Part shown: piece after piece, positions 5,908-53,090 of the stretch
How positions within the stretch are numbered: the stretch's first letter is position 1
How the letters are laid out: each line of letters starts with the position of its first letter
Origin: Macrostomum lignano
Lineage: Eukaryota
DNA length: 64,000 bases
Assembly (NCBI GenBank): GCA_002269645.1
Contig: NIVC01000461.1
Location: 248,001-312,000, forward strand
Reading direction: 5' to 3'
Program-made: the position numbers and the translations under genes
The notes under the pieces: generated by a model
What the model was told of the DNA's origin: nothing
Seen by the model: only the letters and a program-made list of their open reading frames with translations
The model's database searches: none

Positions 5908-6168
5908 TAGCAACCGATTGGCAACCGACGCATCCTGTATAGCAACCGATTGGCAACCGACGCATCCTGTATAGCAACCGATTGGCAACCGACGCATCCT
6001 GCTTAGCAACCGATTGGCAACCGACGCATCCTGCTTAGCAACCGATTGGCAACCGACGCATCCTGCTTAGCAACCGATTGGCAACCGACGCATCTTGTAT
6101 AGCAACCGATTGGCAACCGACGCATCCTGCGTAGCAGCTAATTGGCAACCGACGCATTTTGCATAGCA
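5908..6168. repeat. 32 bp minisatellite, about 8 copies
   Basis: Unit tagcaaccgattggcaaccgacgcatcctg(ta/ct). Confidence 0.95.
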
Positions 6169-6226
6169 ACCAAAATACAAAAGTGACGCGTTTCCATAGC
6201 GACCAATCCAAACTACACGTAGCCAA

Positions 6227-7985: not shown

Positions 7986-9797
7986 CTGTGTCTGTGTATG
8001 TTTGAGTTTTTGTGTACCTGTGTATGTCTGTATTTTTGTGTCTGGATGCATCTGTGTATGTCTGTGTGTATGTCCGTGTATTTCTGTGTGTGTGCCTGTA
8101 TGCATCTGTGTATGTCTGTGTATTTCTGTGTGTGTGCCTGTATGCATCTGTGTATGTCTGTGTGTTTGTGTGTGTGCCTGTATGCATCTGTGTATGTCCG
8201 TGTATTTGTGTGTGTGCCTGTATGCATCTGTGTATGTCCGTGTATTTGTGTGTGTGCCTGTATGCATCTGTGTATGTGTGTGTGTTTGTGTGCCTGTATG
8301 CATCTGTGTATGTCTGTGTGTTTGTGTGCCTGTATGCATCTGTGTATGTCTGTGTGTTTGTGTGCTTGTATGCATCTGTGTATGTCTGTGTGTTTGTGTG
8401 CCTGTATGCATCTGTGTATGTCCGTGTATTTGTGTGTGTGCCTGTATGCATCTGTGTATGTCTGTGTGTTTGTGTGCCTGTATGCATCTGTGTATGTCTG
8501 TGTGTTTGTGTGCCTGTATGCATCTGTGTATGTCTGTGTGTTTGTGTGCCTGTATGCATCTGTGTATGTCCGTGTATTTGTGTGTGCCTGTATGCATCTG
8601 TGTATGTCTGTGTGTTTGTGTGCCTGCATGCATCTGTGCATGTCCGTGTATTTGTGTGTGTGCCTGTATGCATCTGTGTGTATGTCCGTGTATTTGTGTG
8701 TGTGCCTGTATGCATCTGTGTATGTCTGTGTGTTTGTGTGCCTGCATGCATCTGTGCATGTCCGTGTATTTGTGTATGTGTCTGCATGCATCTGTGTATG
8801 TCCGTGTATGTGTCTGCATGCATCTGTGTATGTCCGTGTATGTGTCTGCATGCATCTGTGTATGTCCGTGTATGTGCCTGCATGCATCTGTGTATGTCCG
8901 TGTATGTGTCTGCATGCATCTGTGTATGTCCGTGTATGTGTCTGCATGCATCTGTGTATGTCCGTGTATGTGTCTGCATGCATCTGTGTATGTCCGTGTA
9001 TGTGTCTGCATGCATCTGTGTATGTCCGTGTATGTGCCTGCATGCATCTGTGTATGTCCGTGTATGTGTCTGCATGCATCTGTGTATGTCCGTGTATGTG
9101 TCTGCATGCATCTGTGTATGTCCGTGTATGTGCCTGCATGCATCTGTGTATGTCCGTGTATGTGTCTGCATGCATCTGTGTATGTCCGTGTATGTGTCTG
9201 CATGCATCTGTGTATGTCCGTGTATGTGTCTGCATGCATCTGTGTATGTCCGTGTATGTGTCTGCATGCATCTGTGTATGTCCGTGTATGTGTCTGCATG
9301 CATCTGTGCATGTCCGTGTATGTGACTGCATGCATCTGTGCATGTCCGTGTATGTGTCTGCATGCATCTGTGTATGTCCGTGTATGTGTCTGCATGCATC
9401 TGTGTATGTCCGTGTATGTGTCTGCATGCATCTGTGTATGTCCGTGTATGTGTCTGCATGCATCTGTGTATGTCCGTGTATGTGTCTGCATGCATCTGTG
9501 TATGTCCGTGTATGTGTCTGCATGCATCTGTGTATGTCCGTGTATGTGTCTGCATGCATCTGTGTATGTCCGTGTATGTGTCTGCATGCATCTGTGTATG
9601 TCCGTGTATGTGTCTGCATGCATCTGTGTATGTCCGTGTATGTGTCTGCATGCATCTGTGTATGTCCGTGTATGTGCCTGCATGCATCTGTGTATGTCCG
9701 TGTATGTGTCTGCATGCATCTGTGTATGTCCGTGTATGTGTCTGCATGCATCTGTGTATGTCCGTGTATGTGTCTGCATGCATCTGTGTATGTGTGT
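7986..9797. repeat. TG-rich minisatellite, 32-40 bp units
   Basis: The 3' half is a clean gtatgtccgtgtatgtgtctgcatgcatctgt; the 5' half has longer variant units. Confidence 0.95.
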
Positions 9798-10460
9798 GTT
9801 CTCGTCAGGGTTTGAGCAAAACAATATCAGTTAAAGTACAAGAAAAGTAAGCCGTTTCAGAGGATATAAAAAAGCTACTCTTATGGCTTCTGCAGCCTCA
9901 GTTTTGGTCTTTCCGGCACGCTATTTCTATCCCAATGGATTGGCAACAAAACTCTCGCCAGTCCATTATTGAATTCTTGGATACAGTGGTGCAGAAAAAT
10001 GTCATAAATTTGCTCAGCACATTTCAAATCGATACTGCGTGACAACTCTTAATCTCTTAGAATTGCAACGGGTTTGTGCGCTTATATTCTCGATTCGATT
10101 ATTCTCGTTCGAAAATTAGACAAGCAGCCAGAATAGAGTGACAACTAATGCCTTGATTAGCAATTTATACCGATATGATTTCTGTTTCGAGTTTGTCTGA
10201 GACACTTATCGATTGCATAGTAGCTGGCAAAGCAGTTTCCGTTTTTAATATTAAGTTAGAGATTTAAAAAATATTTTCCTCAACAGGATTATCCAATTAC
10301 TTTGAAGTTGAATCAATTTCCTCGAATCCCATTCGCATTGGCCTCGTGTCAGTGTATAACGATTATTCCAATATATTTTGTCTACACGATAAGCTGCTAA
10401 TACTTAGTAAAGACAGACCGGGTTTTATATAGCATTGCATAGTAATAGTAGTATAGTATT

Positions 10461-10984: not shown

Positions 10985-12589
10985 GAAACGATCCAAGCAG
11001 TTGTAATTTGGCACACAAGTACTTGGCCTTGCACTCAACTTGAAAGTAAAAAACGCATTAAAATTCCTTACAATCACCATAAATAAGGGTTCAAACTTGG
11101 CAGACAGGGCCCAGTCCAAAACGCACAGAAATGAACACACATATTTCATTACAAACGCAAGTTTATTTCTGTGGGAGAAAGTGCAGGAATTACAGAAATA
11201 ACAGACTGAGCTGATGCGGATGAAATGTGACTGTTTCAAAGAAAAAAAAGAGCAAAAAAAGAACGCACGAGAAAAATGCCCGATTTGTTTTCTTATTCTC
11301 GTATTACACAAAAGTGACAGTTAAAGACCAAAGAATGCTACTAACAGAAGTAGCAAGTTGAAGATGGATGATGTGAATAGCGAGTACGCCCTATATTTGC
11401 TTGAAACCAATCAGTCAATTTAAGTAGCAGCAGATTGGCCTCACTTGTCAAGCACGCTTGGCTTTTTACAGAATACCGCAAAAATAAATTTTTACGCAAC
11501 CAACCAATTAAAGCAATAAAATTCGCTTCTTGTCTACTGAAACTAGCAATAGAAAAGTAGGCTATCTAGCGCATGACATATATTCTGTGGTATTCTGTAA
11601 ATTAAGTTAACGCGAGTTTAGTAACAAATTTATATTAAACAGCAGATTATAGACAGTATCATCAGAAAAAGTAAAAGAGGACGAAGTTACACTGGGAGAG
11701 GGGAAAAAGTACAAGTAATTGTAGAAAAAATAAAGACTAATGCACTTAGCAGTCAACTGGGGTTTGAGAGGGGGCTGAGTTGAGAAGCTGGGACTAAGAG
11801 ATTAAGTTGAAAGATTGCACAAAGGCCAGGTGTCAGTCAGCTTTTCTGTTCCAAGCGCATACAAAGCAGTAATACATGATGCTGTACAATTGAGCACTAC
11901 AATAGCAGAGGATGATGGATAACCGCTAAATCCTAGCAGCAAGAAATGCCGTCTGTCAAAGCCGATGCACTACTACCAAACAGCAGTAGTGCAACTAGCA
12001 TATTAACCAACAAATTATTTTGATAATGCAGATTTTTGTTATAAGATAATTGAGAACAAAAATAGAGAATATTATTACAGACAAACAGAAAAGGTCAATC
12101 AACGAGTAACTACTATATGTTAGCATGCTAAACAAGTAGTATCGAAAGCGTACTATAGCTATTATATACAGATATAGTATGATTATTCAACAGATACGCT
12201 ATGCATCACTGTTTTTATCATAACGACGCGAACACGAAAATTAAAGCTGCCAGGTTTTTTAAAGTACAAAAAATAATTATTATAATAATAGTAGTAATAT
12301 TAGTAGGCTAGCAAAGAAACGAGTTCAATTTATTAACAGTAGCAGTGTGTATATCTGTAAGAAATAACAGGCCACTTATGAGCAAGAGGCTTATATCTTA
12401 GAAGAATAAATAGTTTGCTTCATAGCTGTCAGACAGGGATGGCAATTCTTATAATTATTTCTAAGAAACGGATAAGCCCGTACTTTTAATTCTGTGCGAA
12501 AAAAGGTCAATTTACAAAAAATTGTACTTAAATTTCTGTAATTGTTTTGCAATAATGCTAACTATAGAATATCTCACGTCAACTGTAAA

Positions 12590-12790
12590 TACGTCACTTG
12601 CGTCGCCCTAAAGGCGTTTCAGAGTCCTTTAAGAGTCAATTTGAGACGTTTTGATTGTTTTGAGTCGTATCTGAGGCGTCTAAAGCGCATCTGCGTCACG
12701 TATTGATGAAAACTCTATTTGATCTACTTGAGTTAGTAGAAAGTTAAGCGCTAACACAACGACTCTTGGACAACTAGTAAAAGCTAATTT
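12590..12790. repeat. Dispersed repeat, copy 1 of 3 (unclassified)
   Basis: gagttagtagaaagttaagcgc(t/c)aacacaacga(c/t)tcttggac is shared with 47940-47982, and tttaagagtcaa(t/a)ttgag is shared with 14655-14676. Confidence 0.6.
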
Positions 12791-12919
12791 ATCGATTAGT
12801 TTGTGAAGCCGCCTGACCCAAACGACTCCCACATTTGTTTAGACACAGCAAAATACAAATAAATGGCCAGTTGAATTATCCATTATCCCCAAAGCTTGGT
12901 GCACATGGGCCAAAGCTAA

Positions 12920-14572
12920 CTATAGATACCTCCGCTTCTTGAAGCCGGGCGGGGCCAGGCTAGTGTTATTGTTGTTATTGACGCCCAGCCGGTCCCGCAG
13001 GCCGGCCAGCTCGGCCTCATAGGCAGCCAGCATTTCCGCGCCGGCGCCTTTCATCAGCCGGACGTCGGCGTCCAGCTCCTCTAAGGCGCGGTACTCGCCG
13101 GCCAGCAGGCGGGCCCGAATCCCAGCCAGTCCGCCTGCGGTTGGGCGCCGACTGTCCGGCCAGCGGGCCAGCCGGTCCAGCAGGTCGAGCGCCGAGGCGC
13201 GCCAATCCGTCGCCGACGCCGATGGTGATGATGTTGGCGCCAGTATCATTGTTGACGACGCGTTGCTCGAGGCCGAGCTGGCGGCAGCGAGAGTCAGAGC
13301 CATCGACATTGAGATTGACGAGACCGGCCCGGCCATATGCGGCGGCTGAGGCGCCTGCGGCTGCTGAGGCGGCGGCATCGGCGGTTGCTCCTCGTCGAGA
13401 TCAACGCCGTGCACGGGTAGCGACGGGGCAGCGGCGGCGCCGGAGGCGGCGGCAACGGAGGTGTTGGTCTGCGTTCTGGCAGTGGGCGCTGTAGCGAACA
13501 GCAGCTGATGGTGCTGCTGATGAAGCTGCGGCTGCTGGCCTGGGCTGGCCACAATCTTTGAGGCGCCTGACATTGCCGGCTTTTGAACTACAATCACCGG
13601 CTTGCCGAAGCCTGATGTGTTCGGCCGGCTGATGACTCGGACAGTTTGCTGCTGCTGTTGCTGTTGGGTGTGATGAAGCAACGGCTGCTGCTGATGCTGC
13701 TGTTGCTGGGCGTGATGAAGCATCGGCTGATGCTGATGCTGCTGTTGCTGGGTGTGATGAAGTACCGACTGCTGCTGCTGATGCTGCTGTTGCTGGGTGT
13801 GATGAAGCACCGACTGCTGCTGATGCTGGATTCCGCGCCCAGTATCGGCTGTATGCGGCGGTCCGGCGACAATATAGATTGGAGTCTGAACTGACTCGGA
13901 TGTCTGCACCAGCACGGGCGGCCGGGTAGGGGTCGACAAGGCCTGATGCTGCTGCTGAGGCTGCTGAGGCTGCAAAGGCGGCACCTGAGCAGCTTGCGGC
14001 TGCGGCTGAGACGGCGGCGGCAGGGCCGACACGGCAACATTGGCCAGCGTCACCAAGTCCTCAGCGATGGCTGCCGCGGTGGCTTGCGCCAGAGGATCGT
14101 CGTTAGACTCGCAAGCTGGAGCGGCGGCTGGAGCTGCAGCGTCAGGCATTTCTGCATCCTTCTGATCGTCTTCAGCCTGCTGCTGCGAAGTGGAGGCCAG
14201 CAGCTGGCGCCGGAACTCCTCTGCGGCGGCTAGGAGCTCCTCCTGGCGTTGCGTGGCCCGAGACAGCAGCTGTTGATTGGGCTTACTGGGCAGGGCGGCG
14301 GCCGCGGGAGTCTTGGATGCCCGGCCGGCCGCAGGGGGCTTCACCTTGGCCCGGTCCGGCTCTCGCTGCTGCTGCTCTTTCAGCATCGCAGCTGGCGGCG
14401 CCTCCGTTTCGCTTCCGTTAGCCGTCTGCTGCTTCCGGCGCAGTTCAACCGCCACAGCGTCGGCCCGCCTGCCAGCCTCGGTAAGCGCGGCTGCGTCGTT
14501 CGCCCAGTCCAGGGCGGGCACCACGCAGCGGCCTTCCTCGCGCCAGTCGCCACCGGTGTCCCGGCCGAACAC
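12920..14572 (-). CDS. EMSY: EMSY-like exon 2 (A/Q/P-rich linker, degenerate bromodomain-like C-terminus, KKRR)
   Basis: Acceptor catcccag/gtg on the minus strand, open to TAG at 12920-12922. Confidence 0.85.
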   Translation of the reverse strand: MFGRDTGGDWREEGRCVVPALDWANDAAALTEAGRRADAVAVELRRKQQTANGSETEAPPAAMLKEQQQREPDRAKVKPPAAGRASKTPAAAALPSKPNQQLLSRATQRQEELLAAAEEFRRQLLASTSQQQAEDDQKDAEMPDAAAPAAAPACESNDDPLAQATAAAIAEDLVTLANVAVSALPPPSQPQPQAAQVPPLQPQQPQQQHQALSTPTRPPVLVQTSESVQTPIYIVAGPPHTADTGRGIQHQQQSVLHHTQQQQHQQQQSVLHHTQQQQHQHQPMLHHAQQQQHQQQPLLHHTQQQQQQQTVRVISRPNTSGFGKPVIVVQKPAMSGASKIVASPGQQPQLHQQHHQLLFATAPTARTQTNTSVAAASGAAAAPSLPVHGVDLDEEQPPMPPPQQPQAPQPPHMAGPVSSISMSMALTLAAASSASSNASSTMILAPTSSPSASATDWRASALDLLDRLARWPDSRRPTAGGLAGIRARLLAGEYRALEELDADVRLMKGAGAEMLAAYEAELAGLRDRLGVNNNNNTSLAPPGFKKRRYL

Positions 14573-16521
14573 CTGGGATGTCAGGTGCATAGGGGGATAT
14601 GGGTATTAGATGGCTCTCAAAATGACGAGATGTCGAGATACAGGTCGCCAAAAAGTCGTTTAAGAGTCAAATTGAGGCGCTTATTGTCTGCGACTCTGAA
14701 ACGCTGCACCCTCAGATACCCCTCGGGAGGTCGCTCCATACTCCAAGTATACTCCCATACTCCCATGGGAGGTCGCTGCACCCTCAGATACCCCCGGGAG
14801 GTCGCTCCATACTCAGATACCCCCGGGAGGTCGCTGCACCCTCAGATACCCCGGGAGGTCGCTCCATACTACAAGTATACTCCCATACTCCCATGGGAGG
14901 TCGCTGCACACTCAGATACCCCCGGGAGGTCGCTGCACCCTCAGATACCCCGGGAGGTCGCTCCATACTCCAAGTATACTCCCATACTCCCATGGGAGGT
15001 CGCTGCACCCTCAGATACCCCGGGAGGTCGCTCCATACTCCAAGTATACTCCCATACTCCCATGGGAGGTCGCTGCACCCTCAGATACCCCGGGAGGTCG
15101 CTCCATACTCCAAGTATACTCCCATACTCCCATGGGAGGTCGCTGCACCCTCAGATACCCCGGGAGGTCGCTCCATACTACAAGTATACTCCCATACTCC
15201 CATGGGAGGTCGCTGCACCCTCAGATACCCCCGGGAGGTCGCTGCACCCTCAGATACCCCGGGAGGTCGCTCCATACTCCAAGTATACTCCCATACTCCC
15301 ATGGGAGGTCGCTGCACCCTCAGATACCCCGGGAGGTCGCTCCATACTCGAAGTATACTCCCATACTCTCATGGGAGGTCGCTGCACCCTCAGATACCCC
15401 TCGGGAGGTCGCTGCACCCTCAGATACCCCCTGGGAGGTCGCTGCACCTTCAGATACCCCCGGGAGGTCGCTTCGCCCTCAGATACCCCCGGGAGGTCGC
15501 TCCATACTCAGATACCCCCGGAAGATCGCTCGCTCCCTCAGATACCCCCGGGAGGTCGCTGCACCCTCAGATACCCCCGGGAGGTCGCTCCATACTCAGA
15601 TACCCCTGGGAGGTCGCTCCATACTCTAAGTATACTCCCATACTCCCATGGGAGGTCGCTGCACCCTCAGATACCCCTGGGAGGTCGCTCCATACTCCCA
15701 GTATACTCCCATACTCCCATGGGAGGTCGCTGCACCCTCAGATACCCCCGGGAGGTCGCTCCATACTCAGATACCCCGGGGAGGTCGCTCCATACTCAGA
15801 TACCCCGGGAGGTCGCTCCATACTCAGATACCCCGGGGAGGTCGCTCCATACTCAGATACCCCCCGGAGGTCGCTCCATACTCAGATACCCCCGGGAGGT
15901 CGCTCCATACTCAGATACCCCCCCGGAGGTCGCTCCATACTCAGATACCCCCGGGAGGTCGCTCCATACTCAGATACCCCCGGAAGGTCGCTCCATACTC
16001 AGATACCCCCGGGAGGTCGCTCCATACTCAGATACCCCCGGGAGGTCGCTCCATACTCAGATACCCCTGAGAGGTCGCTATACCCCAGAAGCCTTTCAGA
16101 AACCACTGTAATAAAACTCTTGTAAATCGTATTGATAGGCTGCCTTAGGAGTGTATCATAAATTGCATTTGTCTGATAAGCCACTGCAATCCGAACAAAT
16201 ACAACTCAGCAATACCAACATACCCAGTCAGCAATACCAACATACCCAGTCAGCAATGGCAGACAATTCCTCGTCAAGTGCGGCCCGGCGGCACTCGCAG
16301 CGATGTCGGGTCTCCGAGACGCCCAGGGCGGCGCGCAATCCGCGCAACAAGTCGCGCTTAGCCTCGGTGAGGGCGCCCTGGGCGCGCATTACAGACACGG
16401 CGTCGCCATATAGGCGAAGCTCCTTCCTACGCAGCAGGCCGAGGCACTCCTCCCTAGTCAGGTCCAGCAGGGAGGGGCCGCTGCTTCCACTGCCGCAGGC
16501 TTTCAGTGCGTTGTTCAGCAT
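12920..16521 (-). CDS. EMSY: EMSY-like ENT-domain chromatin protein, 2 coding exons (16521-16246, 14572-12920), about 642 aa
   Basis: Exon 1 SLLDLTREECLGLLRRKELRLYGDAVSVMRAQGALTEAKRDLLRGLRAALGVSETRHRCECRRAALDEELSAIA matches the EMSY ENT domain. A phase-0 GT-AG intron (16245-14573) joins it to VFGRDTGGDWREEGRCVVPAL, equivalent to the EMSY segment EWSIEGRRLVPL. An alternative in-frame ATG lies at 16548. Confidence 0.85.
14620..14702. repeat. Dispersed repeat, copy 2 of 3 (fragment)
   Basis: gacgagatgtcg...gtcgccaaaaagtcgtttaagagtcaaatt aligns with 47800-47850. Confidence 0.55.
14703..16086. repeat. Modular minisatellite in the EMSY intron
   Basis: Three modules share the head gggaggtcgct: A (gcaccctcagatacccc), B (ccatactccaagtatactcccatactcccat) and hybrid C (ccatactcagatacccc). 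Confidence 0.95.
16246..16521 (-). CDS. EMSY: EMSY-like exon 1 (ENT domain)
   Basis: ENT motif; donor gactgg/gtatgt on the minus strand. Confidence 0.9.
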
Positions 16522-18805
16522 TGATAATATAATCTGTTGGATCAGCATTTTGTGGGCTTATAATAATAAAGTTATTTTTTTCATATTTTCACTTTATAAC
16601 TGTCGATTTCACATTGAGCTTTTTGTTTACTTTTTAACTTAACTAGTCCAAGAATTCTTATTGCAATAATAAATGCAACACTATAGTGAAAAGGCAATAT
16701 TTAGTAGGGTAACTTACTTTTTAATATTTAAAATAAACTTCACTAGGTTTTAATAGCATTATATATATATATATATATATATTTTACTGCAAATTGATAT
16801 TTTTTAACATGGGTCTATACTATAAGCTATATGATACATATAGATATCATTATATTTTCTTATCTATCAGTGTTAAATGTACAAATCAATGACAATTAAC
16901 TAAATGATAGACTGATGGTTTATGTAGAAATTTTTTTTCATTATCTTTTACTCTTTTACTTTGTTCTTTAGATATATCCATATCGGAGTCTAGTTTTACT
17001 ACCTTACAAATAAAGAAATAACAAAATTCATTTTGACACTTGTCAAGTTAAGATCTAGGTCTAAAAATTAGTCCAGATTTGTCTATTTATCATTTTTATA
17101 GCAAATAAAGATAGATAAAGACAATTCATTTTTAATATATAGGAAGGAAACAATAGATATAAATAGACCAAGATGGCATAGTATAGCAAATTAATAAATA
17201 ATAGCCAATTATCGGCCTTTTTTAGTTTTTTTCAACATATTGAATCACTTTGACAAGGTTTGTCTTTTTGACAAATCATCTAATAGCTAGCTACAATATG
17301 GCTTATAATATGGGTACAATGTAGATATCTCAATTGTAGCCAATGGCCATTATTGCAGATAGTGTCTAGTGCAAAGACTGGCCCTTGGTAGTGCAATAGG
17401 GATAGATATTGCTATATCCATATGACATACAGCAATTTTTGATATGCATCTATATATGCTCATAATAGCATAGATAATGTTTATCCATTAGAAGTCTTTT
17501 TTACTCTATCTATAACCTTTTGACATAGCCTTTATGCTAGGCTTTAATAGGCCAATGCATTTGCATATTTATAAAATTTATTCTAATAAGGGACTATGTC
17601 TATAGAGATAAGCTAGGCATATAAAATATCTTTTACTTTCTATAAATGCTAAGAAAAGATACCTTATCTAATCTATATTAGATTTTTATATGTTTATACT
17701 AAAAAATTATCTTATATACTAAAATATGGCTTATTTAATAAAAAGTATAAAAATAGATACCTTGTTTTGCACTGTCTAGGACTAGGCCTTTGTTATGGAT
17801 TGCAATTATTGTCTAGACAAAAATTCAGATTTGTCACCATTGTCAGACCTATGCTATAATATAGTATCCAATTAGCAATCTTAATCTTGAAAAAAATTCT
17901 CAATCCTTATCTTGCCTAATGATTTCAATCCTGTCTAACCTCTAATGTCAACCCAAACTTTCTCTACTACTACTGCTGCCTGGTCCCTTAAAAAAGGATC
18001 AAGATGCTAATACAGGCCTTTGAGAAGCTATAATGCTATAACACTTAGAGGCAATTATAAAAAAGCTACACAATAAGCTAGCCAATGGATTCTATGGACC
18101 ATGTATTCTTAAAACTTAGCTTAGGCCTAGGCCAATTACAAAAGGGACCATTTAACAGATAGCAGAACTTGGCTATCTTCTAGAGTTTAGTTTTATATAT
18201 TTAATAATTTTAAAAAAATAATGATTTCCTTAGTAACTGCAATTACTTGTAAACATTCATTGGTTTAGACTTGGTAGTTTGTCAATTTATGTTTATATCT
18301 ATTAGTTTGAGATGGCTATTGGCTATGTCTATGGCCAAAACCTGCAACCACTCCCTGTTTTTTGAAAGGACTTAGGGTAGAAGGGACTGGGATTCTGAGA
18401 GATTTCTTACCTTGCTTGCTTTTTTTGTCAATATTGAGCAACAACTCTTTTTCTAATCTAAGCAATCATGGCTAGATACCCTACAGCACCTACTTTGATA
18501 ATTCCTATTGCTATACCTAATGTATATCCTATGGGCTATAGCAGACCTCTGCAACTTCAACCTTATATTGCGCAAATTGAATACAAGCCAAGGCCCTGTT
18601 TGACACCTATCTTAACAAATTTCTGTGGTATCATTACTATCTACGCAATACCTTTGAGCTTTGGCAACATCCCATTCTAGGTGGCACATTACTAAAATGT
18701 CTAAAACTCTTTATTTAGTAGTTTAACAAACTGTCTATTGTTTTCCAATGTTATAACTTAATTAAAAGTTTTAAAAAAAATTTAGGGAGTGCTTATCCAC
18801 ACAGT

Positions 18806-19221
18806 CCCATGCCAATAATTCCAATTTTATCTACATGGATCCATGTAGATAATTTATAGCTTATCCTCATGGCAGTTTATTGAAATAGCTACCACCATTC
18901 AAGTTTATAGGCCATGCCAATAATTCTAATTTTATTCACACAGATCCATGTTGGTAATTTTTAGCTTATCCCTATGGCAGCTTATTGGAATAGAGAACCT
19001 TAAAATAAATCTACTCAAAAACTGTCTAATTGTTTATTATTTTACAAATCTTCCAAATAAACTACTGAATACTAAATAGTATTGAGTGACTTTGCTAAAA
19101 CTTTTTGTCATTAAAGGGTTAGTTTTAAATAGTTGACTAGCTGCCAGCTTCGCTTAGAAATGATGAACAACCCTAAGATCAAGGTGAATAAGACTTACAA
19201 AATTCAAAAGTCAATATGTAA

Positions 19222-19252
<31 letters not shown>

Positions 19253-19459
19253 GACAATATTGATTAAGTCAGTAACAAAACTAGACATAAGCAACTGCAC
19301 AATCTTAGCTATAGGGATAAGCTGAAAATTATTGACATATCTATATGGATAACATTGGAATTATCGACATAGCCTATAGACTTGAATGGTGGAAGCTATT
19401 TCAATAAGCTGCCATGGAGATAAGCTGGAAATTATCAACATGGACCTATATGGATAAAA
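18806..19459. repeat. Old inverted repeat: arms about 18826-18975 and 19310-19459, each with a ~105 bp internal duplication
   Basis: The reverse complement of 19310-19459 aligns with 18826-18975 (e.g. gaaatagct(a/t)ccaccattcaagt(t/c)tatagg). Differences are mostly transitions. Confidence 0.75.
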
Positions 19460-19758
19460 GGTATTGTCCACTTTGGTAATGGCCATTTTGGTAATAGCCA
19501 TTTTAGTAACAACAACAAGTGAGAATAATATAATACATTAATTGATATGCTCCAAAAGAATGTGTGAACAAACTTTAAGAAAGAAGGACAAAATACATGT
19601 GTACCTGCATGTGTTTAACTTGTTTTAAAGTGTTTTAACCAATTTATTTTAATTTCCTGATCTATGAGTTAGATTACATGCATTTTGTAATTGACCAAAT
19701 TTTGTGTACCATTTATATTAGAATCTCTGATACTAATTAGCAAATAGTGACTTAAAAT

Positions 19759-20964
19759 ACGAGTATAACTTTGGCCGTCAACTATTCCGTCAACTTTTCG
19801 TGTTAGTAGGATAAATAACTTTTTCCGTTAACTATTCCGTCAACTTTTCCGTCAACTTTTCCGTTAACTTTTCCGTTAACTATTCCGTCAAGTATTCCGA
19901 TAAATTTTTCCATTCTCTTCCGTCAACATTTCCGTTTACTATTCCGTTAACTTTTCCGCCAAATATCTCATCACTTTTACGTTAACTATATGAGCCTCTT
20001 CATATCGCCGGTTCGAAAAACGGAACCGGTTCCGAACCAGTTTGACGCTCTTCATATCAATGGTTCGAAAAACAGAATCAGTTCCGGAACATGGTTCTGG
20101 TTCTAGAATATGGTTCGAGAAATTTTCTCGAACCGTTGTCATGTTTACACGTTAACAGTAAAATTTGAAATCGTCAATTTTTTATTATTGTTATATAATT
20201 ATTCCTTTTTTGTCATATCCAAGAGGAAACAAAGTCAAAGAACGAAAAAATCAAATTGTAAAGACTGTCAAACATAAAATGGGTTCGAAGCTCCTCATTT
20301 CACACTGGTTCTGGTTCTAGAACTTGAATTTATTCTGGTTCTAGAACCGATTGCCGTGAAGAGGCTCTATTTCATCAACATTTATGCAAGTCCATAAAAT
20401 ATATTCTATCAAATTTTTTGTGTACTCTGAATGGAAAGTGATAATTTTTTGCATAAGTGCAGTTTCCTTAGTTCCTTATACATGCTTTAAGTTTGTTGAG
20501 TATATACACATGCACATGTATAAATTAGAAATAAAAAACACACGCAAAAATTTCCAGCGTGACATGTTCCAGAATTTAATTGGTATTGCTGCACTACCGG
20601 CACTATAACATCTGCACTTGTTCATTGATTTATCTTTGTGAAATAAAGCGCTGGTACTAGGGAAAATGGAAAAGATGTACGTTGTTACTAACGCAGGCTT
20701 GTTTTTTCATCAATATATAAGCATGCAAACACAATAAATGATCAAAGAGCTACTCGCATGATGATCCTATTTGAGAAAGTCACATATGTTTTTTCAGAAC
20801 AATAAATTGTTGATGGAAAATTTGACAGAATACTTGACGGAAAAGTTGATGGAATACTTGACAGAAAAGTTAATGGAAAAGTTGACGGAAAAGTTAACAG
20901 AAATGTTGACGGAAAAGTTAACGGAAAAGTTGATGGAAAAGTTGACAGCCAAAGTTATACTCGT
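19759..20964. mobile_element. Non-autonomous DNA transposon with 24 bp TIRs, 12 bp subterminal tandem repeats and an 8 bp TSD
   Basis: TIR acgagtataactttggc(c/t)gtcaac at 19759-19782 and 20941-20964. TSD cttaaaat at 19751-19758 and 20965-20972. Arms consist of ttttccgtcaac / gttgacggaaaa units. Confidence 0.9.
19992..20367. mobile_element. Nested MITE, PIF/Harbinger-like
   Basis: TIR gagcctcttca (19992-20002) / tgaagaggctc (20357-20367), 3 bp TSD tat on both sides, palindromic ggttc/gaacc-rich interior. Confidence 0.7.
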
Positions 20965-22226
20965 CTTAAAATTATAGTATCTATTTTTTTCTTCATTAAT
21001 TATTTAGATTTTTTCAACTTCAATATGTGTATAGCCTATACTTATAAGAGCTTGCTTTGCTTAATTTAACAGTTTAACTACAAAGTTTAATGATATGTGC
21101 AATAAGATATTTGAGATGTTAATTATTAAACTAATTATTGCTAAACTTTATTATCATAAAAATAAAGTGTTGACAGTCATAAATCTGCTTTGTTACCAAA
21201 ATGGCTGTTCCCAAAGTAGATTGTATTAGGATAAAATTGGAATTACTGGCATAGAACCATGGGGATAGGCCTAAGCACTTCCAATAATTAAATGTGCAAA
21301 ACTAGAAGATAGCCTAGAGGATAAATCAATTTATTTTTGGTTAGGCCTAAAGTGGTCTGTCACCAAAGAAAAGGCCTGATGCCCTGAAACCCTGACAATG
21401 ACAAATATGGCCTAACAATAACCAGTTAGGCCTAAGCCTAAATAAAACATTTTGTATAAAACTTTAAAAACTATGTCTTTCTTTTTTAAGAAAGACATTC
21501 TTTTTTATTCTTGTCTGTCTTTCTGCCGATAGGGTTGAACTTGAATCTTGGAAGTTAGTTCAACTAGGCCTAATGCATTTAGGCCTAGGCCCCTACCTCA
21601 GATTTGAACTTTGACGTTTAGCAAAAGCCTTAAAGATATTTCGCACAAATAGCGTGGGCATAATCTATATAACGTAGAACATTTAGAAAAGAGAATCAAT
21701 ATCTTTTGTTATCTATTTGGGACTAGTCTAAGCTACCTAATACCTACGTTGTATGACTTACTATAGATATGAGTAAAGGCAAGGGCAAGTGCCGAGCTGC
21801 AAAAACGAAAGAGAAAGCTGTATTAGAATTATATTTACAGCACTTGACTGATGCCTGTTGTGATGAAGAATAATTTTTTAAACGCTACAACTCGATAATT
21901 TTTATACAAATTTTGAATCCGTTAAAAACAATAAATTTGTCTTTATTTTCTGGAAATTGAATCTTTGTTAAAATTTGCTAAAAGTAATTCGCCTTAACAA
22001 AGTAAAATCAATTATTGTCCTTCTATAGAAAAATTACCTGAAAATGTTATTATGGATGTAATTATAACTTTTTATTAGCTAATATCAATTTATACTGATT
22101 TTTCTCTTTGGCTCTATTGACTCTTACAATTTTGGCCCAGTTTAATTTGACAATATAAAGTTGAAATATTAGGCACGCTGGCCCAGCATTCGTTCGGGCC
22201 TCATTTCGCCTCAAATGGATTTAGTG

Positions 22227-22374
22227 CAGTGGCGCAGCCGAGGACAAAGGGGCACAGTTGCCCGCTGCCCTTCAAAATTAATATTTTTTATCTTTACGTA
22301 CTTTTAACACTTTTCCGTGCAATTTTTCTTATTTTGAGATGCAGAACCACGAGAAAATATTTACTGCGCCAGTG
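22227..22374. mobile_element. Possible short hAT-like MITE
   Basis: Ends cagtggcgcag / ctgcgccagtg form an 11 bp imperfect TIR; no TSD was found. Confidence 0.3.
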
Positions 22375-23088
22375 AATAAATTAGTTTAAGTTTTAGTTGA
22401 TTAGTTTTAAAATCTGTTTGATAAGTGAAATACATAAATTTTTAAATTCCTGTGTTTATATACATCCTTTCATTCACTATGACGTAAATTATATTTTATT
22501 TCCAAGTAATATGAGTTTCTACCTTACTCTTTCTACACACCGCTACACATGATGCCGCTGCTATTTATGTCAGTAATTTCCTTAGTGAAGCAAAACAGCG
22601 TTTTATAATCGATATGTATATTTTTTGTTTACCTTATGATTTATTTAGGTTAACTTAACTACCAATAAATGGCATAATCCTTAAACTAGGACCTTTGCTA
22701 GATAACTATAACAATGTGTTTTTCGTCATATTTGATAATTTGGGCGTATTAGAGCCCATGCAGTTTAGTTTGTAAATTAGACATTAAAACTATGTGTAAA
22801 AACTATGCAACTTGTGACTTTGATACCAATTCAAGTTCTGCCAATTTTAGTACTACCCGGTAGAGTTATGAATTTTAACAATATGAAATATTTAAATGAC
22901 ATCAGCTTCTTCCCTACTGTGAATCTATATGCACTGTATATTTTCTTTATGCAATAATATTTTATTCATATTATAAAAAAATCCACCACAAGTAAATATT
23001 TATGATACACTCTTCTACATTTACCACAATTTTATCATATAAACCATATCATACCATCCTGCTGGGTTAAATTATTTTTTCAGGCTCA

Positions 23089-23454: not shown

Positions 23455-26400
23455 GTAAGTTTTTTCAATATTTTATTTGTTTTTTTTAACTTTATTGTAA
23501 TTAAAAGTAAGTGTTACAATTTTTAAGATGTGTTAATATATATGCAAGCAGGAGTCTCCAGCTGCCACTGTACTGTCTGACGAGGAAGAGGAAACTCAGT
23601 TCATCCGCTGGGTAGGCAGGCCCAGGCTTAGTAGAGAGCTGTCAATTCTGCTAGACAGAATTTATTAGTTTGACTAATTAGCCAATCATGCTTCGTTTCA
23701 GCACAGTAGAGTACACAGGGCGCCAGGAGTTCCTCTCTGTGTCAGCGGGGCCAGTTTGTGTGTCAGGAGTTCCTCTCTGTGTCAGTGAGGCCAGTTTGTG
23801 TGTCAGGAGTTCCTCTCTGTGTCTGTGGGGCCAGTTTGTGTGTCAGGAGTTCCTCTCTGTGTCAGTGGGGCCAGTTTGTGTGTCAGGAGTTCCGCTCTGT
23901 GTCAGTGGGGCCAGTTTGTGTGTCAGGAGTTCCTCTCTGTGTCAGTGGGGCCAGTTTGTGTGTCAGGAGTTCCTCTCTGTGTCAGTGGGGCCAGTTTGTG
24001 TGTCAGGAGTTCCTCTCTGTGTCAGTGAGGCCAGTTTGTGTGTCAGGAGTTCCTCTCTGTGTCAGTGGGGCCAGTTTGTGTGTCAGGAGTTCCTCTCTGT
24101 GTCAGTGGGACCAGTTTGTGTGTCAGGAGTTCCTCTCTGTGTCAGCGGGACCAGTTTGTGTGTCAGGAGTTCCTCTCTGTGTCAGCGGGACCAGTTTGTG
24201 TGTCAGGAGTTCCTCTCTGTGTCAGCGGGACCAGTTTGTGTGTCAGGAGTTCCTCTCTGTGTCAGCGGGACCAGTTTGTGTGTCAGGAGTTCCTCTCTGT
24301 GTCAGTGGGGCCAGTTTGTGTGTCAGGAGTTCCTCTCTGTGTCAGTGAGACCAGTTTGTGTGTCAGGAGTTCCTCTCTGTGTCAGTGGGGCCAGTTTGTG
24401 TGTCAGGAGTTCCTCTCTGTGTCAGTGAGGCCAGTTTGTGTGTCAGGAGTTCCTCTCTGTGTCAGTGGGGCCAGTTTGTGTGTCAGGAGTTCCTCTCTGT
24501 GTCAGCGGGACCAGTTTGTGTGTCAGGAGTTCCTCTCTGTGTCAGCGGGACCAGTTTGTGTGTCAGGAATTCCTCTCTGTGTCAGTGAGGCCAGTTTGTG
24601 TGTCAGGAGTTCCTCTCTGTGTCAGTGGGGCCAGTTTGTGTGTCAGGAGTTCCTCTCTGTGTCAGTGAGGCCAGTTTGTGTGTCAGGAGTTCCTCTCTGT
24701 GTCAGTGGGGCCAGTTTGTGTGTCAGGAGTTCCTCTCTGTGTCAGTGGGGCCAGTTAGTGTGTCAGGAGTTCCGCTCTGTGTCAGTGGGGCCAGTTTGTG
24801 TGTCAGGAGTTCCTCTCTGTGTCAGTGAGGCCAGTTTGTGTGTCAGGAGTTCCGCTCTGTGTCAGTGAGGCCAGTTTGTGTGTCAGGAGTTCCGCTCTGT
24901 GTCAGTGGGGCCAGTTAGTGTGTCAGGAGTTCCTCTCTGTGTCAGTGGGGCCAGTTTGTGTGTCAGGAGTTCCTCTCTGTGTCAGTGGGGCCAGTTTGTG
25001 CGTCAGGAGTTCCTCTCTGTGTCAGCGGGACCAGTTTGTGTGTCAGGAGTTCCTCTCTGTGTCAGCGGGACCAGTTTGTGTGTCAGGAGTTCCTCTCTGT
25101 GTCAGCGGGACCAGTTTGTGTGTCAGGAGTTCCTCTCTGTGTCAGCGGGACCAGTTTGTGTGTCAGGAGTTCCTCTCTGTGTCAGCGGGGCCAGTTTGTG
25201 TGTCAGGAGTTCCTCTCTGTGTCAGCGGGACCAGTTTGTGTGTCAGGAGTTCCTCTCTGTGTCAGTGAGGCTATTTTGTGTGTCAGGAGTTCCTCTCTGT
25301 GTCAGTGAGGCTATTTTGTGTGTCAGGAGTTCCTCTCTGTGTCAGCGGGACCAGTTTGTGTGTCAGGAGTTCCTCTCTGTGTCAGCGGGACCAGTTTGTG
25401 TGTCAGGAGTTCCTCTCTGTGTCAGTGGGGCCAGTTTGTGTGTCAGGAGTTCCTCTCTGTGTCAGTGGGGCCAGTTTGTGTGTCAGGAGTTCCTCTCTGT
25501 GTCAGTGGGGCCAGTTAGTGTGTCAGGAGTTCCGCTCTGTGTCAGTGGGGCCAGTTTGTGTGTCAGGAGTTCCTCTCTGTGTCAGTGGGGCCAGTTTGTG
25601 TGTCAGGAGTTCCTCTCTGTGTCAGTGGGGCCAGTTTGTGTGTCAGGAGTTCCTCTCTGTGTCAGTGGGGCCAGTTTGTGTGTCAGGAGTTCCTCTCTGT
25701 GTCAGTGGGGCCAGTTAGTGTGTCAGGAGTTCCGCTCTGTGTCAGTGGGGCCAGTTTGTGTGTCAGGAGTTCCTCTCTGTGTCAGTGGGGCCAGTTTGTG
25801 TGTCAGGAGTTCCTCTCTGTGTCAGTGGGGCCAGTTTGTGTGTCAGGAGTTCCGCTCTGTGTCAGTGGGGCCATTTTGTGTGTCAGGAGTTCCTCTCTGT
25901 GTCAGTGAGGCCAGTTTGTGTGTCAGGAGTTCCTCTCTGTGTCAGTGAGGCCAGTTTGTGTGTCAGGAGTTCCTCTCTGTGTCAGTGAGGCCAGTTTGTG
26001 TGTCAGGAGTTCCTCTCTGTGTCAGCGGGACCAGTTTGTGTGTCAGGAGTTCCTCTCTGTGTCAGCGGGACCAGTTTGTGTGTCAGGAGTTCCTCTCTGT
26101 GTCAGTGAGGCCAGTTTGTGTGTCAGGAGTTCCTCTCTGTGTCAGCGGGACCAGTTTGTGTGTCAGGAGTTCCTCTCTGTGTCAGCGGGACCAGTTTGTG
26201 TGTCAGGAGTTCCTCTCTGTGTCAGCGGGACCAGTTTGTGTGTCAGGAGTTCCTCTCTGTGTCAGTGAGGCCAGTTTGTGTGTCAGGAGTTCCTCTCTGT
26301 GTCAGCGAGGCCAGTTTGTGTGTCAGGAGTTCCTCTCTGTGTCAGCGGGACCAGTTTGTGTGTCAGGAGTTCCTCTCTGTGTCAGCGGGACCAGTTTGTG

Positions 26401-49402: not shown

Positions 49403-52400
49403 CGGTCGCCAAAATTAAGTCGCTGGGGCCTTAATCTTTTTGTCGTACTGTTTTTTTAACTCGCTGGTTATTCTACAGTTGCTTTGTTCAGACTTTTGAC
49501 TGCGTCTTCGGTCAGCAGTTCAGTTGCTTTCCACGCAATGTGCGAATTGTACTCTCGAAGGTCCTCCTCAGACCTCCTCTGATACTGACCATCGCTTCGT
49601 TTGTCGGGTTACACAAAGTTTTTTTTTGCGGCTGCTATAATCTTTGCCTTGATTTATCTGGTGTTCAAATCGCTACATTGCACTCCAATGGACACTACAG
49701 TTACGCCAGTTGTTGCGGGATCGCATGCTTCGATGATAGGTTGTTGCTTCGTGCATCGATCGAATGGCTCATCATAGTTGATTAGCACTTTTCTACCAGT
49801 CCTTGTATTGAATTTGAACGTTTGCTAAAGTGCAGCTTGCAAATTCGTGTGCTTCTTACGCATTAACATCAGATTGACAGGAAACCTTTTCCACATGACA
49901 TGTAGCAAAGGTTACGCAGTTCTATAGCAGACATCGATTTTTGTAAAGCGTGGTACCGATGGCCAAAACTCTTTTATGGAATGCACCGCTCTTATAGTCG
50001 ACCATTTCCTGACGCAGAATGAGCTTCACTTTTAGCGGCGACGATGGCGTTCTATACATGCACTAAATATATTCTCTTTTGATAAAACAATATACTCAGC
50101 CTTTTAATTGTTCATTTATTTGCTTTTTACTTTTTTGTGCGCGATTTTAAATTTCAATAACAATCTATGGATCATGTACCTCCCCAGTTTCCATATTCGT
50201 GCACTTCTGTGATTTTTATTCTTCTCTAGTCAGCACTTCAGACATTGGGATGCCAAACTATATGCTTATTCTACTTATAATTATGGTATATCTGTGGAAT
50301 ATTTTTAATATTTTCGCTTTTTTACTTATAAATTGTTGCCTGCTTAATTCATTTTTTCCTTCTTGGCTTGATTTACGATTTCTTAAAAAACAGCTCTGCA
50401 TACGTTTCAAAATATTTTATTGCATCCACTTTGAGCACAGATTTTTCTGCTTTTACAGGAAAGCTTTCGGGGTAAAAAGCTTTTCTTTCACTGCAATTCC
50501 ATGTACAGTAGATTATACTGATACAATCTAGTCATATTACAAGCTATATAATTTCTGATGCAATTCTCTCAGATCTCTTTTACATTTCTAGCCGCTTTAA
50601 TGCTTCTTTTTAACTCGTAATTGTGGCATTCAAACTGGACACAGTTTAGAAATTGCTTAATTTAATTGGCACCTTCCTTTGACTTTGCATTAATTGGCAT
50701 GTACTAGTGCGCTCGTACTCGTATCATAACTAACTCAGTGCACCAGTTAATAAAAATTTGCCAAAGAAACAATGTTTTCTATGGTTGTTCAATGCTGACG
50801 CCCGTTAACGTATTTAAATATTTGTACTAAAAACTAAATACATATTCTATCTTTTGCTTTATTTCTTTGATTTTCTATCTAAACATGTAAGTCGTACATG
50901 TTTATCTATAAATGATTTTAATACAAATATATAAATTATTCTATGTGGCTAAATCTGTTTTTGCTAACGCTAACGCTTATTGTTTTTTATACTACTATAT
51001 TATTTATCGTATACTGCATGTACATGTAGCTCGAACAATTAAATTGGTTTGGCTGCTGAAATTTTACTGAAAATCAATACCTACATGTACATTATGGACA
51101 TACATACACGTGTATTTATTGAACGCGTGAACTTCAAGGATTACTTAAGGCAGATACATACATGTAGTACGAGCAGTGTGATGTGTTGCATTCTCAGGCC
51201 GCCGCTTTGCCGAGACCCAGTCCCCGGAAAGTACCAGAGGCCAAGCGAGTTTTCGTAAAAATATAGGCCTGCCCTGTGCCCCCATGGGTCTTCACCCCCG
51301 GAATCCAGTTGCGGAACTGAGTACTAGTAGATAGTTGAGTGCATGCTAGCTTTGGGAAGCTTTTCTGCGACGCAGGCCCCAAGATCAGTGTAAGGATATA
51401 ACTCTAATGTATAAATATTTAAATGGGGTATAAAGTAAGAAGAAATGAAGTTTAGGATGTTTCAGTTTTCCTTCAAAGCTAAAATTCAAGTCTTAAGTAT
51501 TTTACTTTGTTACTTTACTTATACAATGCTTATTTAACTTAGCATTCTCAGCTGATTTTTAACGAAAAATTTGTTTACCTGGGTTGTTTGGCTATAATAA
51601 TCAAGTGTATTAGCAGCATATTGCAGTAAATTTCGTTTTCGCAAGTGGATCTCTAATGAAATAGAATAGAAATAAATCTTTTATTACTGTCGAACAATAT
51701 TTTGTACGTTTATAGGATTCTACACAACAAACAATACTTCATATAGATAATCGTTCTTCAATAGTTTATACAATTATACTTTATAGTCGTAGGTGCTGTT
51801 GTAGAGCAAAAAAACTGCTTCATTGATAACGTACAAATATGTTAAATATCTTGTCGCTGAAAAATCAGCGAATTATATTAGACATTTTGATGTGTGTAAT
51901 TTTCTTTTAGTTTAGTTTTAGTGTACCCTAATTTTCACATTGTCATTATTATTTCACAAAATAATAATTGGATCCTAGAATATTTTCATGACATAATAGT
52001 GTCATAGTAATCCGTTTAGACTGTTATGCTTATGTAATATATAAAATAAACTTGCTTTATTTTGTATAACTATTTGAACTTTTGGATAATCAAAAAGAAA
52101 ATTCTATATGCCTTTGGCTTTGATTATTTATAAAGAAACCTTTTAAAACATAAATCCTTTATTATAAATATTGACATATTGTGAGTAGCTATTTATATAA
52201 TGTTATGGACTATTGTCTAATAATATATATTAATCAATGAATAGATGTTTATAAACATTGAGATCTTTCATTAATAAATGTTAATAGACAATTATTGTTA
52301 TATAGAAATTTTCCTTGCTAGCAACACATTTTGCATTCATTTTTTTCAAAAAGAGCAAAGTTTTCTCTTGATTTTAATTCTAAAGTTTTCTAACAATAAA

Positions 52401-53090
52401 TATTAGCAATAGTAAATGTCATAAAAGTTCATAAATAATAAATAAGATATTTAGAATAGGGCTACCATTTCTAGGGGTGCCATCCTTTTTCAAGGGCAAT
52501 ATCACAGGGGTATAAATTTGTTTTCAAATAGGCATTTTCTTAGGGGCCTTTGTATGATAGTTTTTTTAAGGGGTATTATTCCTAGGTTCTCAAAATTAAA
52601 GCACTTTTCCTAAGATGCCAAAGTTGCAAAAAAGGGGAAATCATTTTTTACTAATGCTACAATGCAATTTTACTAAATGATAGATTCTGTGGTTTCTTAG
52701 AAAGTTTCAAAAATTGAATATAGTCAGTCAATAAAGTTATAGCAGTGTTATCATTTCAAAAATATTGTCTTCAAGGACAAAAATCAGTATATTTTTATTT
52801 AATTCTTACAGATTACTTTGTTTAACCTTTTGTTCTTGTTTTTGTTCTGAAAATAATTTTTATGCTAATGCTTTGGATATTAATGGAAGCTAAGATTTTA
52901 ATCAATAATACCCATGCTCAATATAGCATTTAAATATCAAAGTTATTTAAAACTTTAAAACTATTATAATTAAATAGTTAAAATGTGTTAAAGAGTCAAT
53001 TTCACTACTTATATCGTTCATGTAGCCACAAAGACAACTGCATTTAACGCCAAAGGTCGCCAATCCGCTAAGCCAGCCAAGCCGTCCCCC

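Follow-up and report, generated by a model that had tools for sequence, protein, structure and literature searches.

Ongoing CpG loss in a tract upstream of EMSY in Macrostomum lignano points to a probable, discrete germline-methylated island

We analyzed a window of 64,000 nucleotides from the flatworm Macrostomum lignano (contig NIVC01000461.1 of assembly GCA_002269645.1; contig position = 248000 + window coordinate), in which the genes EMSY, on the minus strand, and anoctamin, on the plus strand from 23084, diverge from a spacer of 6.5 kb that contains a CpG desert. In its ancestral form this CpG-poor tract extends from 16534 to about 21527 (contig 264,534-269,527) and measures 3.78 kb once a transposon-like insertion is excluded. 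Comparison with two paralogous loci revealed that the CpG depletion is ongoing and restricted to the tract rather than a relic of an earlier state. Judging from the substitutions that the copies have accumulated, the tract is probably a discrete island of 5-methylcytosine (5mC) in the germline.

CpG loss is ongoing and confined to the tract

The original prediction, made from the sequence of this window, described a desert at 16621-19758 (3138 bp, GC 29.6%) with six CpG dinucleotides. This count is exact (positions 16984, 17213, 18571, 18644, 19151, and 19365) and compares with 68.6 expected, an observed/expected ratio (o/e) of 0.087; the Poisson probability of so few is 2.5e-22 at an o/e of 1 and 2.9e-18 at the local baseline of 0.85. 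Both contrasts drawn by the prediction were likewise confirmed, since its AT-rich comparison segment at 42301-43300 is CpG-rich (26 CpG, o/e 1.16) and o/e in the EMSY exons ranges from 0.85 to 0.95. AT-rich controls as a whole range from 0.78 to 0.97, against 0.09 in the tract, whose GC content (22-36%) is the lowest of the neighborhood. Two further traits kept only part of their force. GpC is common, as had been stated (o/e 1.6), but not as a special trait, since AT-rich DNA of this genome generally reaches 1.3-1.6, and the abundance of cta, tag, and ggccta is real but modest in size (relative to AT-rich controls, 2.1-fold for CTAT/ATAG, 2.3-fold for TAGG/CCTA, and about 5-fold for AGGCCT and GGCCTA). 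TpA lies slightly above the controls (o/e 1.03 against 0.93-0.97).

To follow the fate of individual CpG sites, we used two paralogous loci, here L002 and L003, which lie about 130 kb apart and in opposite orientation on NIVC01000903.1 (205014-228451, reversed, and 54434-77695). They align with the window at 90-97% identity from EMSY through the spacer to the first anoctamin exon, and the CpG-poor tract is present in all three copies, with 6-9 CpG in each. The nearest pair of copies shifts along the locus: the window pairs with L003 at 9920-10420, L002 pairs with L003 at 5920-6420, and the window is nearest to L002 between 17.4 and 22.9 kb. This mosaic suggests gene conversion or recombination among the copies. 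We therefore rejected a fixed three-taxon tree and relied on tree-free tests and on branch-specific tests, the latter for the window and L002 branches, which are properly polarized by L003 over most of the tract.

The alignments also bear on the borders. The left border, predicted about 100 bp before the EMSY start codon, does exist, but it is placed at the putative trans-splice acceptor of EMSY (16536-16534). The sharp right border claimed at 19758 is instead the left end of a young insertion resembling a miniature inverted-repeat transposable element (MITE), behind which CpG-poor DNA resumes. This MITE-like element has 44-nt terminal inverted repeats of 91% identity, (T/G)ACGAGTATAACTTTGGC, subterminal arrays of the 12-mer TTCCGTCAACTT on both arms, and a target-site duplication, TTAAAA, of 6-7 bp. 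The alignments of L002 and L003 go straight from window position 19758 to 20965, across the empty site GTGACTTAAAATTATAG; the element is thus in the window copy alone and must have inserted recently. The first CpG preserved in all three copies is at 21527, while those at 21015, 21258, 21481, and 21496 are copy-specific. As a side observation, the element contains an internal palindrome at about 20092-20159, with a weak, palindrome-driven Rfam match to mir-9428 on both strands.

Within the tract, 23 positions carry a CpG in at least one copy, and a single one is common to all three. The alternative states are nearly all TG or CA. At 19151 and 19741 the three copies read CG, TG, and CA, so that an ancestral CpG must have been lost twice independently at each of these sites, and we count at least 8 CpG losses since the copies diverged. 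In the tree-free test, 1 CpG site is intact and 20 are variable, against 95 and 36 GpC sites (odds ratio [OR] 53, p = 2.5e-9). The same comparison in seven other regions of the alignment gave odds ratios of 1.3-6.1, none significant; intact and variable sites number 26 and 8 for CpG against 50 and 8 for GpC in the flank 21528-23083, and 28 and 4 against 47 and 2 in EMSY exon 1 with its intron, and the large EMSY exon (148 and 12 for CpG) resembles its GpC sites. Where the paralogues cover EMSY and the first anoctamin segment, CpG is not hypermutable, and CpG depletion is lacking in EMSY (exons and introns) and in anoctamin (the first exon tested and an intron control). In a short unique CpG-free run at 7065-7379 (314 bp, 8.6 CpG expected), neither raised C>T nor CpG turnover was apparent among the three copies.

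Since a CpG-free relic that regains CpG would also display copy-specific CpGs, we simulated three branches with the empirical non-CpG rates, varying the ancestral CpG number and kappa, the rate of CpG transitions relative to non-CpG C>T, with 300 runs per setting. Without a CpG effect (kappa 1), 0/300 runs match the data at every ancestral CpG number. The best fit is reached at a kappa of 10-20; the o/e predicted at equilibrium is then 0.05-0.1, matching the observed value.

Cytosine contexts of the C>T changes

The excess of C>T changes is not limited to CpG. At non-CpG cytosines, 86 of 991 sites changed in the tract (8.7%) and 45 of 1607 (2.8%) in CpG-normal non-coding controls (OR 3.3, p = 7e-11), with T>C (OR 1.5) and all transversion classes unchanged. 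On the window and L002 branches the odds ratio is 27 for CpG (p = 9e-6), 4.7 for CpA (p = 1e-4), and 1.1 for T>C. An independently built second alignment, with the adjacent flank as its only control, reproduced the result for CpG (OR 80) and for non-CpG C>T (OR 2.75, p = 4e-4). The original prediction had proposed to compare the mutation spectrum inside and outside the desert, and across three paralogous copies this comparison is strongly positive. Its bounded domain of germline cytosine modification is upheld insofar as we find a cytosine-specific, heritable mutational process that is limited to the tract.

Along the locus, C>T per G/C site amounts to 4-8% at 16.7-18.5 kb, 11-20% at 18.5-21.2 kb, and 2-5% past 21.5 kb; bin 20920 has 17%, from where values drop to 4% by 21220-21520, and the flank 21528-23083 shows no C>T excess. 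Values elsewhere are about 1-3%, except in bin 12520. This bin (12520-12820, just 3′ of the EMSY stop codon) was rejected as a second hypermutable domain because every substitution class is raised there and L003 is poorly aligned (88% identity, 347 columns); a patch rich in indels or rearranged is the probable explanation. For the tract at 16560-21527, the empirical rates imply an equilibrium GC of about 21%, compared with 29.5% now, which indicates that the island is still losing G+C, its age being sufficient for CpG equilibrium but not for a full compositional one.

Under closer inspection, the changed cytosines share a sequence context. Per site, 59% of CpG, 11.4% of CpA, 7.8% of CpC, and 6.5% of CpT show C>T in the tract. 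The triplet ACA changed at 16% of its sites, against 0.9% in the controls, while TCA is not raised and TCH (5.4% against 3.9%) is not enriched. Compared with background, events more often have T at −2 (0.47 against 0.30) and A at −1 (0.42 against 0.29); G is enriched at +2, CAG (19.6%) and CAC (14.9%) exceed CAA (6.9%) and CAT (8.7%), G at −1 and A at −2 are disfavored, and there is a strong dependence on a 3′ G or A. The combination TACAN changed at 9 of 31 sites in the tract (29%) and at 0 of 68 in the controls. Comparisons within the tract agree, with odds ratios of 4.3 for TACAN against other NNCAN (p = 0.002), 3.0 for TACH against other NNCH (p = 7e-4), and 2.6 for CAG against CAH (p = 0.017); in the second alignment, TACH changed at 16 of 77 sites in the tract and at 0 of 41 in the flank.

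Among non-CpG sites, the mammalian de novo methyltransferases DNMT3A and DNMT3B prefer CpA with T at −2 and A at −1, followed at +2 by C for DNMT3A and by G for DNMT3B (PMC7797059), and in human embryonic stem cells no non-CG motif is more highly methylated than TACAG (PMC3218824). Read from mutations, the C>T context of the tract (CpA above CpT and CpC; T at −2, A at −1, C or G at +2) matches what a DNMT3-type non-CG footprint would look like. These data also revise the decay route assumed in the original prediction, from CpG through TG and CA to TA: the gain of TpA stems from separate CpA>TpA changes at non-CpG cytosines.

The substitutions are strand-symmetric, with 52 on the plus and 44 on the minus strand. 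Base skew is also absent from the tract (AT skew −0.017, GC skew −0.043; 217 TG and 207 CA), and some neighboring segments differ in this respect. Neither the substitutions nor the composition thus contain a strand asymmetry that would be a sign of transcription across the tract.

Candidate mechanism and rival explanations

We propose that a DNMT3-type de novo methyltransferase would act persistently on the island, modifying CpG and, less efficiently, CpA in the context T-A-C-A-(G/C), and that DNMT1 would maintain the CpG methylation. The modification would then be 5mC made by these two enzymes, with methylated CpA as a by-product of the persistent DNMT3 activity. Deamination of 5mC to T would remove CpG about 10-20 times as fast as C>T changes occur locally at non-CpG sites, toward an equilibrium near an o/e of 0.09, and non-CpG cytosines would be lost about three times faster than in neighboring DNA, pushing the tract to lower GC. 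The island would be present in the germline or the stem-cell lineage, with one end exactly at the EMSY acceptor and the other about 1.5 kb before that of anoctamin. Retention of DNMT1 and DNMT3 and a low level of 5mC have been reported for M. lignano (PMC11292947, PMC9246332), while for free-living flatworms the genomic pattern of 5mC is described as unknown (PMC11292947, PMC9246332, PMC10658182). The undescribed system envisaged in the original prediction is therefore dispensable: with both enzymes reported from the species and a context that fits the DNMT3 preference, canonical methylation suffices.

What would direct methylation to this place is a more speculative matter. The ancestral tract contains a foldback of repeat units (18786-19500), located inside the stretch of fastest C>T change (18520-21220). 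Its inverted arms, of 121-154 nt, are 82-83% complementary, and as RNA it is predicted to form a stem of about 190 bp with a minimum free energy of −247 kcal/mol, against −141 +/- 6 for shuffled sequences (z = −18). With slightly less confidence than doubt, we suggest that this foldback might nucleate methylation through hairpin-derived small RNAs or heterochromatin, from where it would spread until blocked by an active 5′ gene end. As another trigger, marking could be linked to transcription of the EMSY outron, which we think rather unlikely; the missing strand skew speaks mildly against it.

Several observations weigh against methylation as the cause, or limit how far it can be carried. The mutation analysis covers one locus in three copies, polarized by majority rule, and the relationships of these copies are mosaic along the locus. 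The TACA motif is based on 9 events and was noticed after inspection of the data. TG and CA, the first products of CpG decay, are hardly in excess in the tract (o/e 1.14 and 1.03; controls, 1.03-1.15 and 0.98-1.20), although a surplus of this kind would be worn away by CpA>TpA decay. The MITE-like element retains a CpG o/e of 1.29 in the midst of the decaying domain, so that it is either very young or escapes methylation. Global 5mC is reported to be low in M. lignano (PMC11292947, PMC9246332). Finally, a second CpG-free tract in the window, described below, is devoid of repeats, and repeat-triggered targeting can therefore not explain everything.

Among the other explanations, the first is enzymatic deamination without methylation, whereby an AID/APOBEC-like defense, or one akin to repeat-induced point mutation (RIP) in fungi, would have edited a duplicated, repeat-bearing tract. 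In its favor, the changes are C>T only, strand-symmetric, strongest near the inverted repeat of a region present in at least three copies, and, as in Neurospora, inclusive of CpA>TpA; RIP, too, turns duplicated DNA AT-rich. However, RIP in Neurospora favors CpA, whereas here CpA is not dominant and CpG is the chief target by about 5-fold (59% against 11% per site), the duplicated DNA spans at least 23 kb while the affected part measures just 3.8 kb, and the organism is an animal reported to have canonical DNMT1 and DNMT3. A RIP-like process was rejected on these grounds. An AID/APOBEC footprint was rejected as well, because a 5′ preference for TpC or CpC, as left by APOBEC, or for the WRC of AID is missing (A at −2 and G at −1 are even disfavored), while dependence on the 3′ base is strong. 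Given, moreover, that T-A-C-A-G/C is the DNMT3 motif, deamination of this kind appears improbable.

We give no more credit to a structure-driven deamination of unmodified cytosine, through melting of AT-rich DNA, a cruciform, or an R-loop over a long outron. The lowest GC of the neighborhood, the strong palindrome, and a possible transcription of the EMSY outron would all favor it, and a C beside a TpA step could breathe more. Yet controls that are equally AT-rich (24-38% GC) are unaffected, with none of their 68 TACA sites changed, deamination of unmodified C would not favor CpG 20-fold, and the absence of strand asymmetry, in substitutions and composition alike, argues against an R-loop or transcription-coupled exposure.

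It is very improbable that the tract owes its composition to the past, be it as an old, uniformly decayed or intrinsically CpG-poor insertion of a transposon or of foreign DNA, or as a formerly methylated region that now evolves neutrally. The tract does contain repeat fragments (the foldback and a U4-like sequence) and took up the MITE-like insertion, and neutral gain alone is expected to create about 12 new CpGs over the three branches, so that copy-specific CpGs by themselves prove nothing. Against this, simulation at kappa 1 never returned 0-1 intact sites together with at least 5 doubletons and 3-4 three-state sites (0/300 each), the CpG losses postdate the split of the copies, and non-CpG C>T is raised now. 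There are also no remnants of transposable element (TE) proteins, no terminal repeats, and no other copy in the window.

No more plausible is an artefact of misalignment, consensus errors, or collapsed haplotypes in low-complexity AT-rich DNA. The species is a hidden polyploid, and redundancy is known from its assembly, a PacBio-based draft (PMC10468722); bin 12520 exemplifies an alignment-driven rise in all substitution types. But the CpG count is independent of any alignment, two alignment methods agree, and the excess is limited to C>T in specific contexts, with T>C and transversions matching the flank, whereas PacBio errors are chiefly indels. Least credible of all is selection against CpG in regulatory DNA upstream of EMSY, for instance to avoid a CpG-binding factor: both CpG-free tracts adjoin gene starts, but the main one diverges faster than its flanks (24.7% of dinucleotides other than CpG are variable, against 13-19%), and neither the raised C>T at TACA nor the repeated independent losses would be explained.

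Taking germline methylation as the probable cause, the machinery is known, comprising DNMT-dependent 5mC, CpG decay, and mosaic methylation. As in the mosaic methylation of other invertebrates, low-o/e domains stand beside domains with an o/e of about 1, and the agents would be germline 5mC deamination and DNMT1/DNMT3. Classically, however, methylation covers the bodies of broadly expressed genes and leaves their flanks free, while here the affected tract is intergenic, upstream of an acceptor. Gene-body methylation was rejected for this reason, as the depleted sequence does not appear to lie over exons or introns, although it might be an outron. The original prediction had called the pattern the inverse of gene-body methylation, and it does differ from the classical one, with the gene bodies examined unaffected; a general rule for 5′ flanks is unproven. 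Methylation directed to transposons or repeats in vertebrates, plants, and some invertebrates, guided by PIWI-interacting or small interfering RNAs and including RNA-directed DNA methylation at inverted repeats in plants, resembles our case in that the target is non-coding and repeat-bearing, with a long inverted repeat at the site of fastest decay and losses in several cytosine contexts; it differs in that most of the 3.8 kb lacks recognizable TE features (neither a Pfam match nor terminal repeats, nor another copy within the 64 kb) and that the second tract is free of repeats.

The non-CG methylation by mammalian DNMT3A/3B (TACAC/TACAG, in oocytes, embryonic stem cells, and neurons) has the same hierarchy, CG far above CA and CA above CT and CC, and the same flanking bases, here read from a C>T footprint. 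Unlike the mammalian cases, the tract belongs to a flatworm, its changes are heritable and hence germline, and the methylation is inferred from mutations. To our knowledge, mammalian non-CG methylation does not leave a comparable regional mutational trace. Methylated low-CpG promoters of vertebrates, or inverse CpG islands, are likewise CpG-poor DNA directly 5′ of a first exon, but vertebrate genomes are depleted throughout, with islands as exceptions, while here the depleted tract is the exception in a CpG-normal background. Unusual features would therefore be the placement of the island, intergenic and on the outron side of a trans-splice acceptor with the examined gene bodies apparently unmethylated, and a DNMT3-like non-CG component in an invertebrate germline.

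A wider, and doubtful, possibility is that M. lignano has its sparse 5mC off gene bodies, in discrete islands just upstream of trans-splice acceptors or first exons, on the outron or promoter-distal side, where CG methylation in the germline would be joined by non-CG methylation of the DNMT3 type. If so, this would be an animal methylation pattern not described so far, possibly tied to spliced-leader (SL) trans-splicing, with the silencing of cryptic starts or of repeats within outrons as a possible role, and 16534-21527 and 52013-53015 would be its first examples. In any case, the locus gives a testable prediction of where 5mC resides in a flatworm model reported to retain DNMT1 and DNMT3, namely in a sharply delimited intergenic island that adjoins a trans-spliced gene amid unmethylated gene bodies. 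It further suggests that the preference of DNMT3 for T-A-C-A-(G/C), known in mammals, is old enough to include a flatworm, and that non-CG methylation in an invertebrate germline can be strong enough to leave a mutational scar. In the recently duplicated genome of M. lignano, germline methylation and enzyme preference may thus be readable from the comparison of paralogues alone.

Sequence content, neighboring genes, and the second tract

Coordinates are collected in Table 1. Coding potential is lacking in the tract, where one frame alone contains 85 stops, and six-frame Pfam searches gave no match at E <= 0.1 and no remnants of TE proteins. Scans of the tract for tRNAs and short interspersed nuclear elements, and for similarity to phage DNA, were negative, and Rfam searches of the tract and the MITE-like element returned only the weak U4-like and mir-9428 matches. 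No terminal inverted or direct repeats occur at the tract ends (16.5 and 21.5 kb), and no further copies were found in the 64-kb window, where self-BLAST detected only the internal units of about 105 bp, or elsewhere in L002 and L003. A single decayed transposon was therefore rejected as a demonstrable identity, the repeat-like pieces being internal only. L003 has deletions within the foldback. The U4-like sequence keeps the AUUGCUAAUUG core and an Sm-like site, and many of its consensus G/C positions read A/T; this weak match, a lead only, is possibly a pseudogene of the U4 small nuclear RNA (snRNA) worn by the same C>T process.

Table 1. Features of the EMSY-anoctamin spacer and the second CpG-free tract, in window coordinates
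Feature	Position	Strand	Remarks
EMSY exon 1 (ENT domain)	16246..16533	-	CpG-normal; 5′ end at the putative trans-splice acceptor
Left (main) part of the depleted, C>T-hypermutable domain	16534..19758		6-7 CpG against ~69 expected; adjoins the putative EMSY acceptor
Decayed U4 snRNA-like sequence	17787..17923	-	Rfam RF00015, 24 bits (gathering threshold 46), E = 0.002-0.03, model positions 1-138 of 138
Foldback repeat core	18786..19500		Units of ~105 bp: two direct (18786-18995), two inverted (19290-19500); fifth, partial unit at 21190-21290
MITE-like DNA transposon	19759..20964 (1.2 kb)		Copy-specific; not in the ancestral domain; CpG o/e 1.29
Right part of the ancestral domain	20965..21527		565 bp without CpG in the window copy
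CpG-normal AT-rich flank	21528..23083		Up to the putative anoctamin acceptor; internal control; CpG o/e 0.78
Second CpG-free tract	52013..53015		Unique sequence, 24% GC, 0 internal CpG against 14.9 expected

Over the large EMSY exon (12920-14590, minus strand), identity to PAA82606.1 of Macrostomum lignano (NIVC01000461.1) is complete (100%). All three annotated EMSY proteins (P0001-P0003) are 5′-partial and begin with IILSMLNN at window position 16533, right behind ccaaCAG. The start of the gene reads ccaaCAG|ATTATATTATCAATG, with the acceptor CAG at 16536-16534 (minus strand), the exon from 16533, and an ATG at 16521-16519; the 3′ end of exon 1 is approximate, as 16246 presumes a junction after ...ADW and one codon later (after V) is equally possible. 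The spliced leader of M. lignano ends in ...TTGCATG, and trans-splice acceptors carry [T/C]TNCAG (PMC8629364). The terminal ATG of the leader is in frame with the EMSY coding sequence from 16533, so that the leader would provide an in-frame AUG. By its annotation, then, EMSY is taken to be SL trans-spliced, with the desert starting at its acceptor. In anoctamin, an acceptor-like site, TTTTTTCAG|GCTCAATG, lies at 23083/84, the first exon base is G, and an ATG follows at 23089; both genes are thus apparently SL trans-spliced, each starting at an acceptor-like site. None of the three loci has a gene call in the spacer, where the promoters of both genes must be located, and the flank at 21528-23083 probably holds promoter sequence.

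The second CpG-free tract stops 76 bp short of the ATG (53091) of a gene on the plus strand and shows no repeat structure in 52013-53015. Its composition is shifted in the same contexts: TAC/(TAC+TAT) is lowered to 0.13 (controls 0.35, p = 6e-4) and TACA/(TACA+TATA) to 0.11 (controls 0.38, p = 0.007), with the TCA/TTA context little altered. Two of four gene starts in the window, those of EMSY and of the gene at 53091, therefore adjoin a desert, and those of anoctamin and of a gene of 216 amino acids do not. Protein searches for paralogous loci that would include or reach toward the second tract gave no match, with either the gene at 53690-54298 or anoctamin exon 1 as query. The gene past the tract spans two overlapping open reading frames in different frames (53091-54110 and 53690-54298), which reflects either a 1-bp frameshift in the assembly or a very short intron; an exact look-up of 53091-54110 found no record, and the collections searched contained no matching protein.

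The main tract and 52013-53015 are the only two long CpG-free runs of unique sequence in the window. The majority of the others are minisatellite arrays whose unit has no CpG, and window-wide maps of CpG o/e consequently mislead unless these arrays are masked. Such arrays are extremely dense in introns and spacers (periods of 12-200 bp, up to 5 kb; for example, 23724-28801, 8037-9793, 40614-42000, and 14767-16079), and their lengths vary among the paralogous copies.

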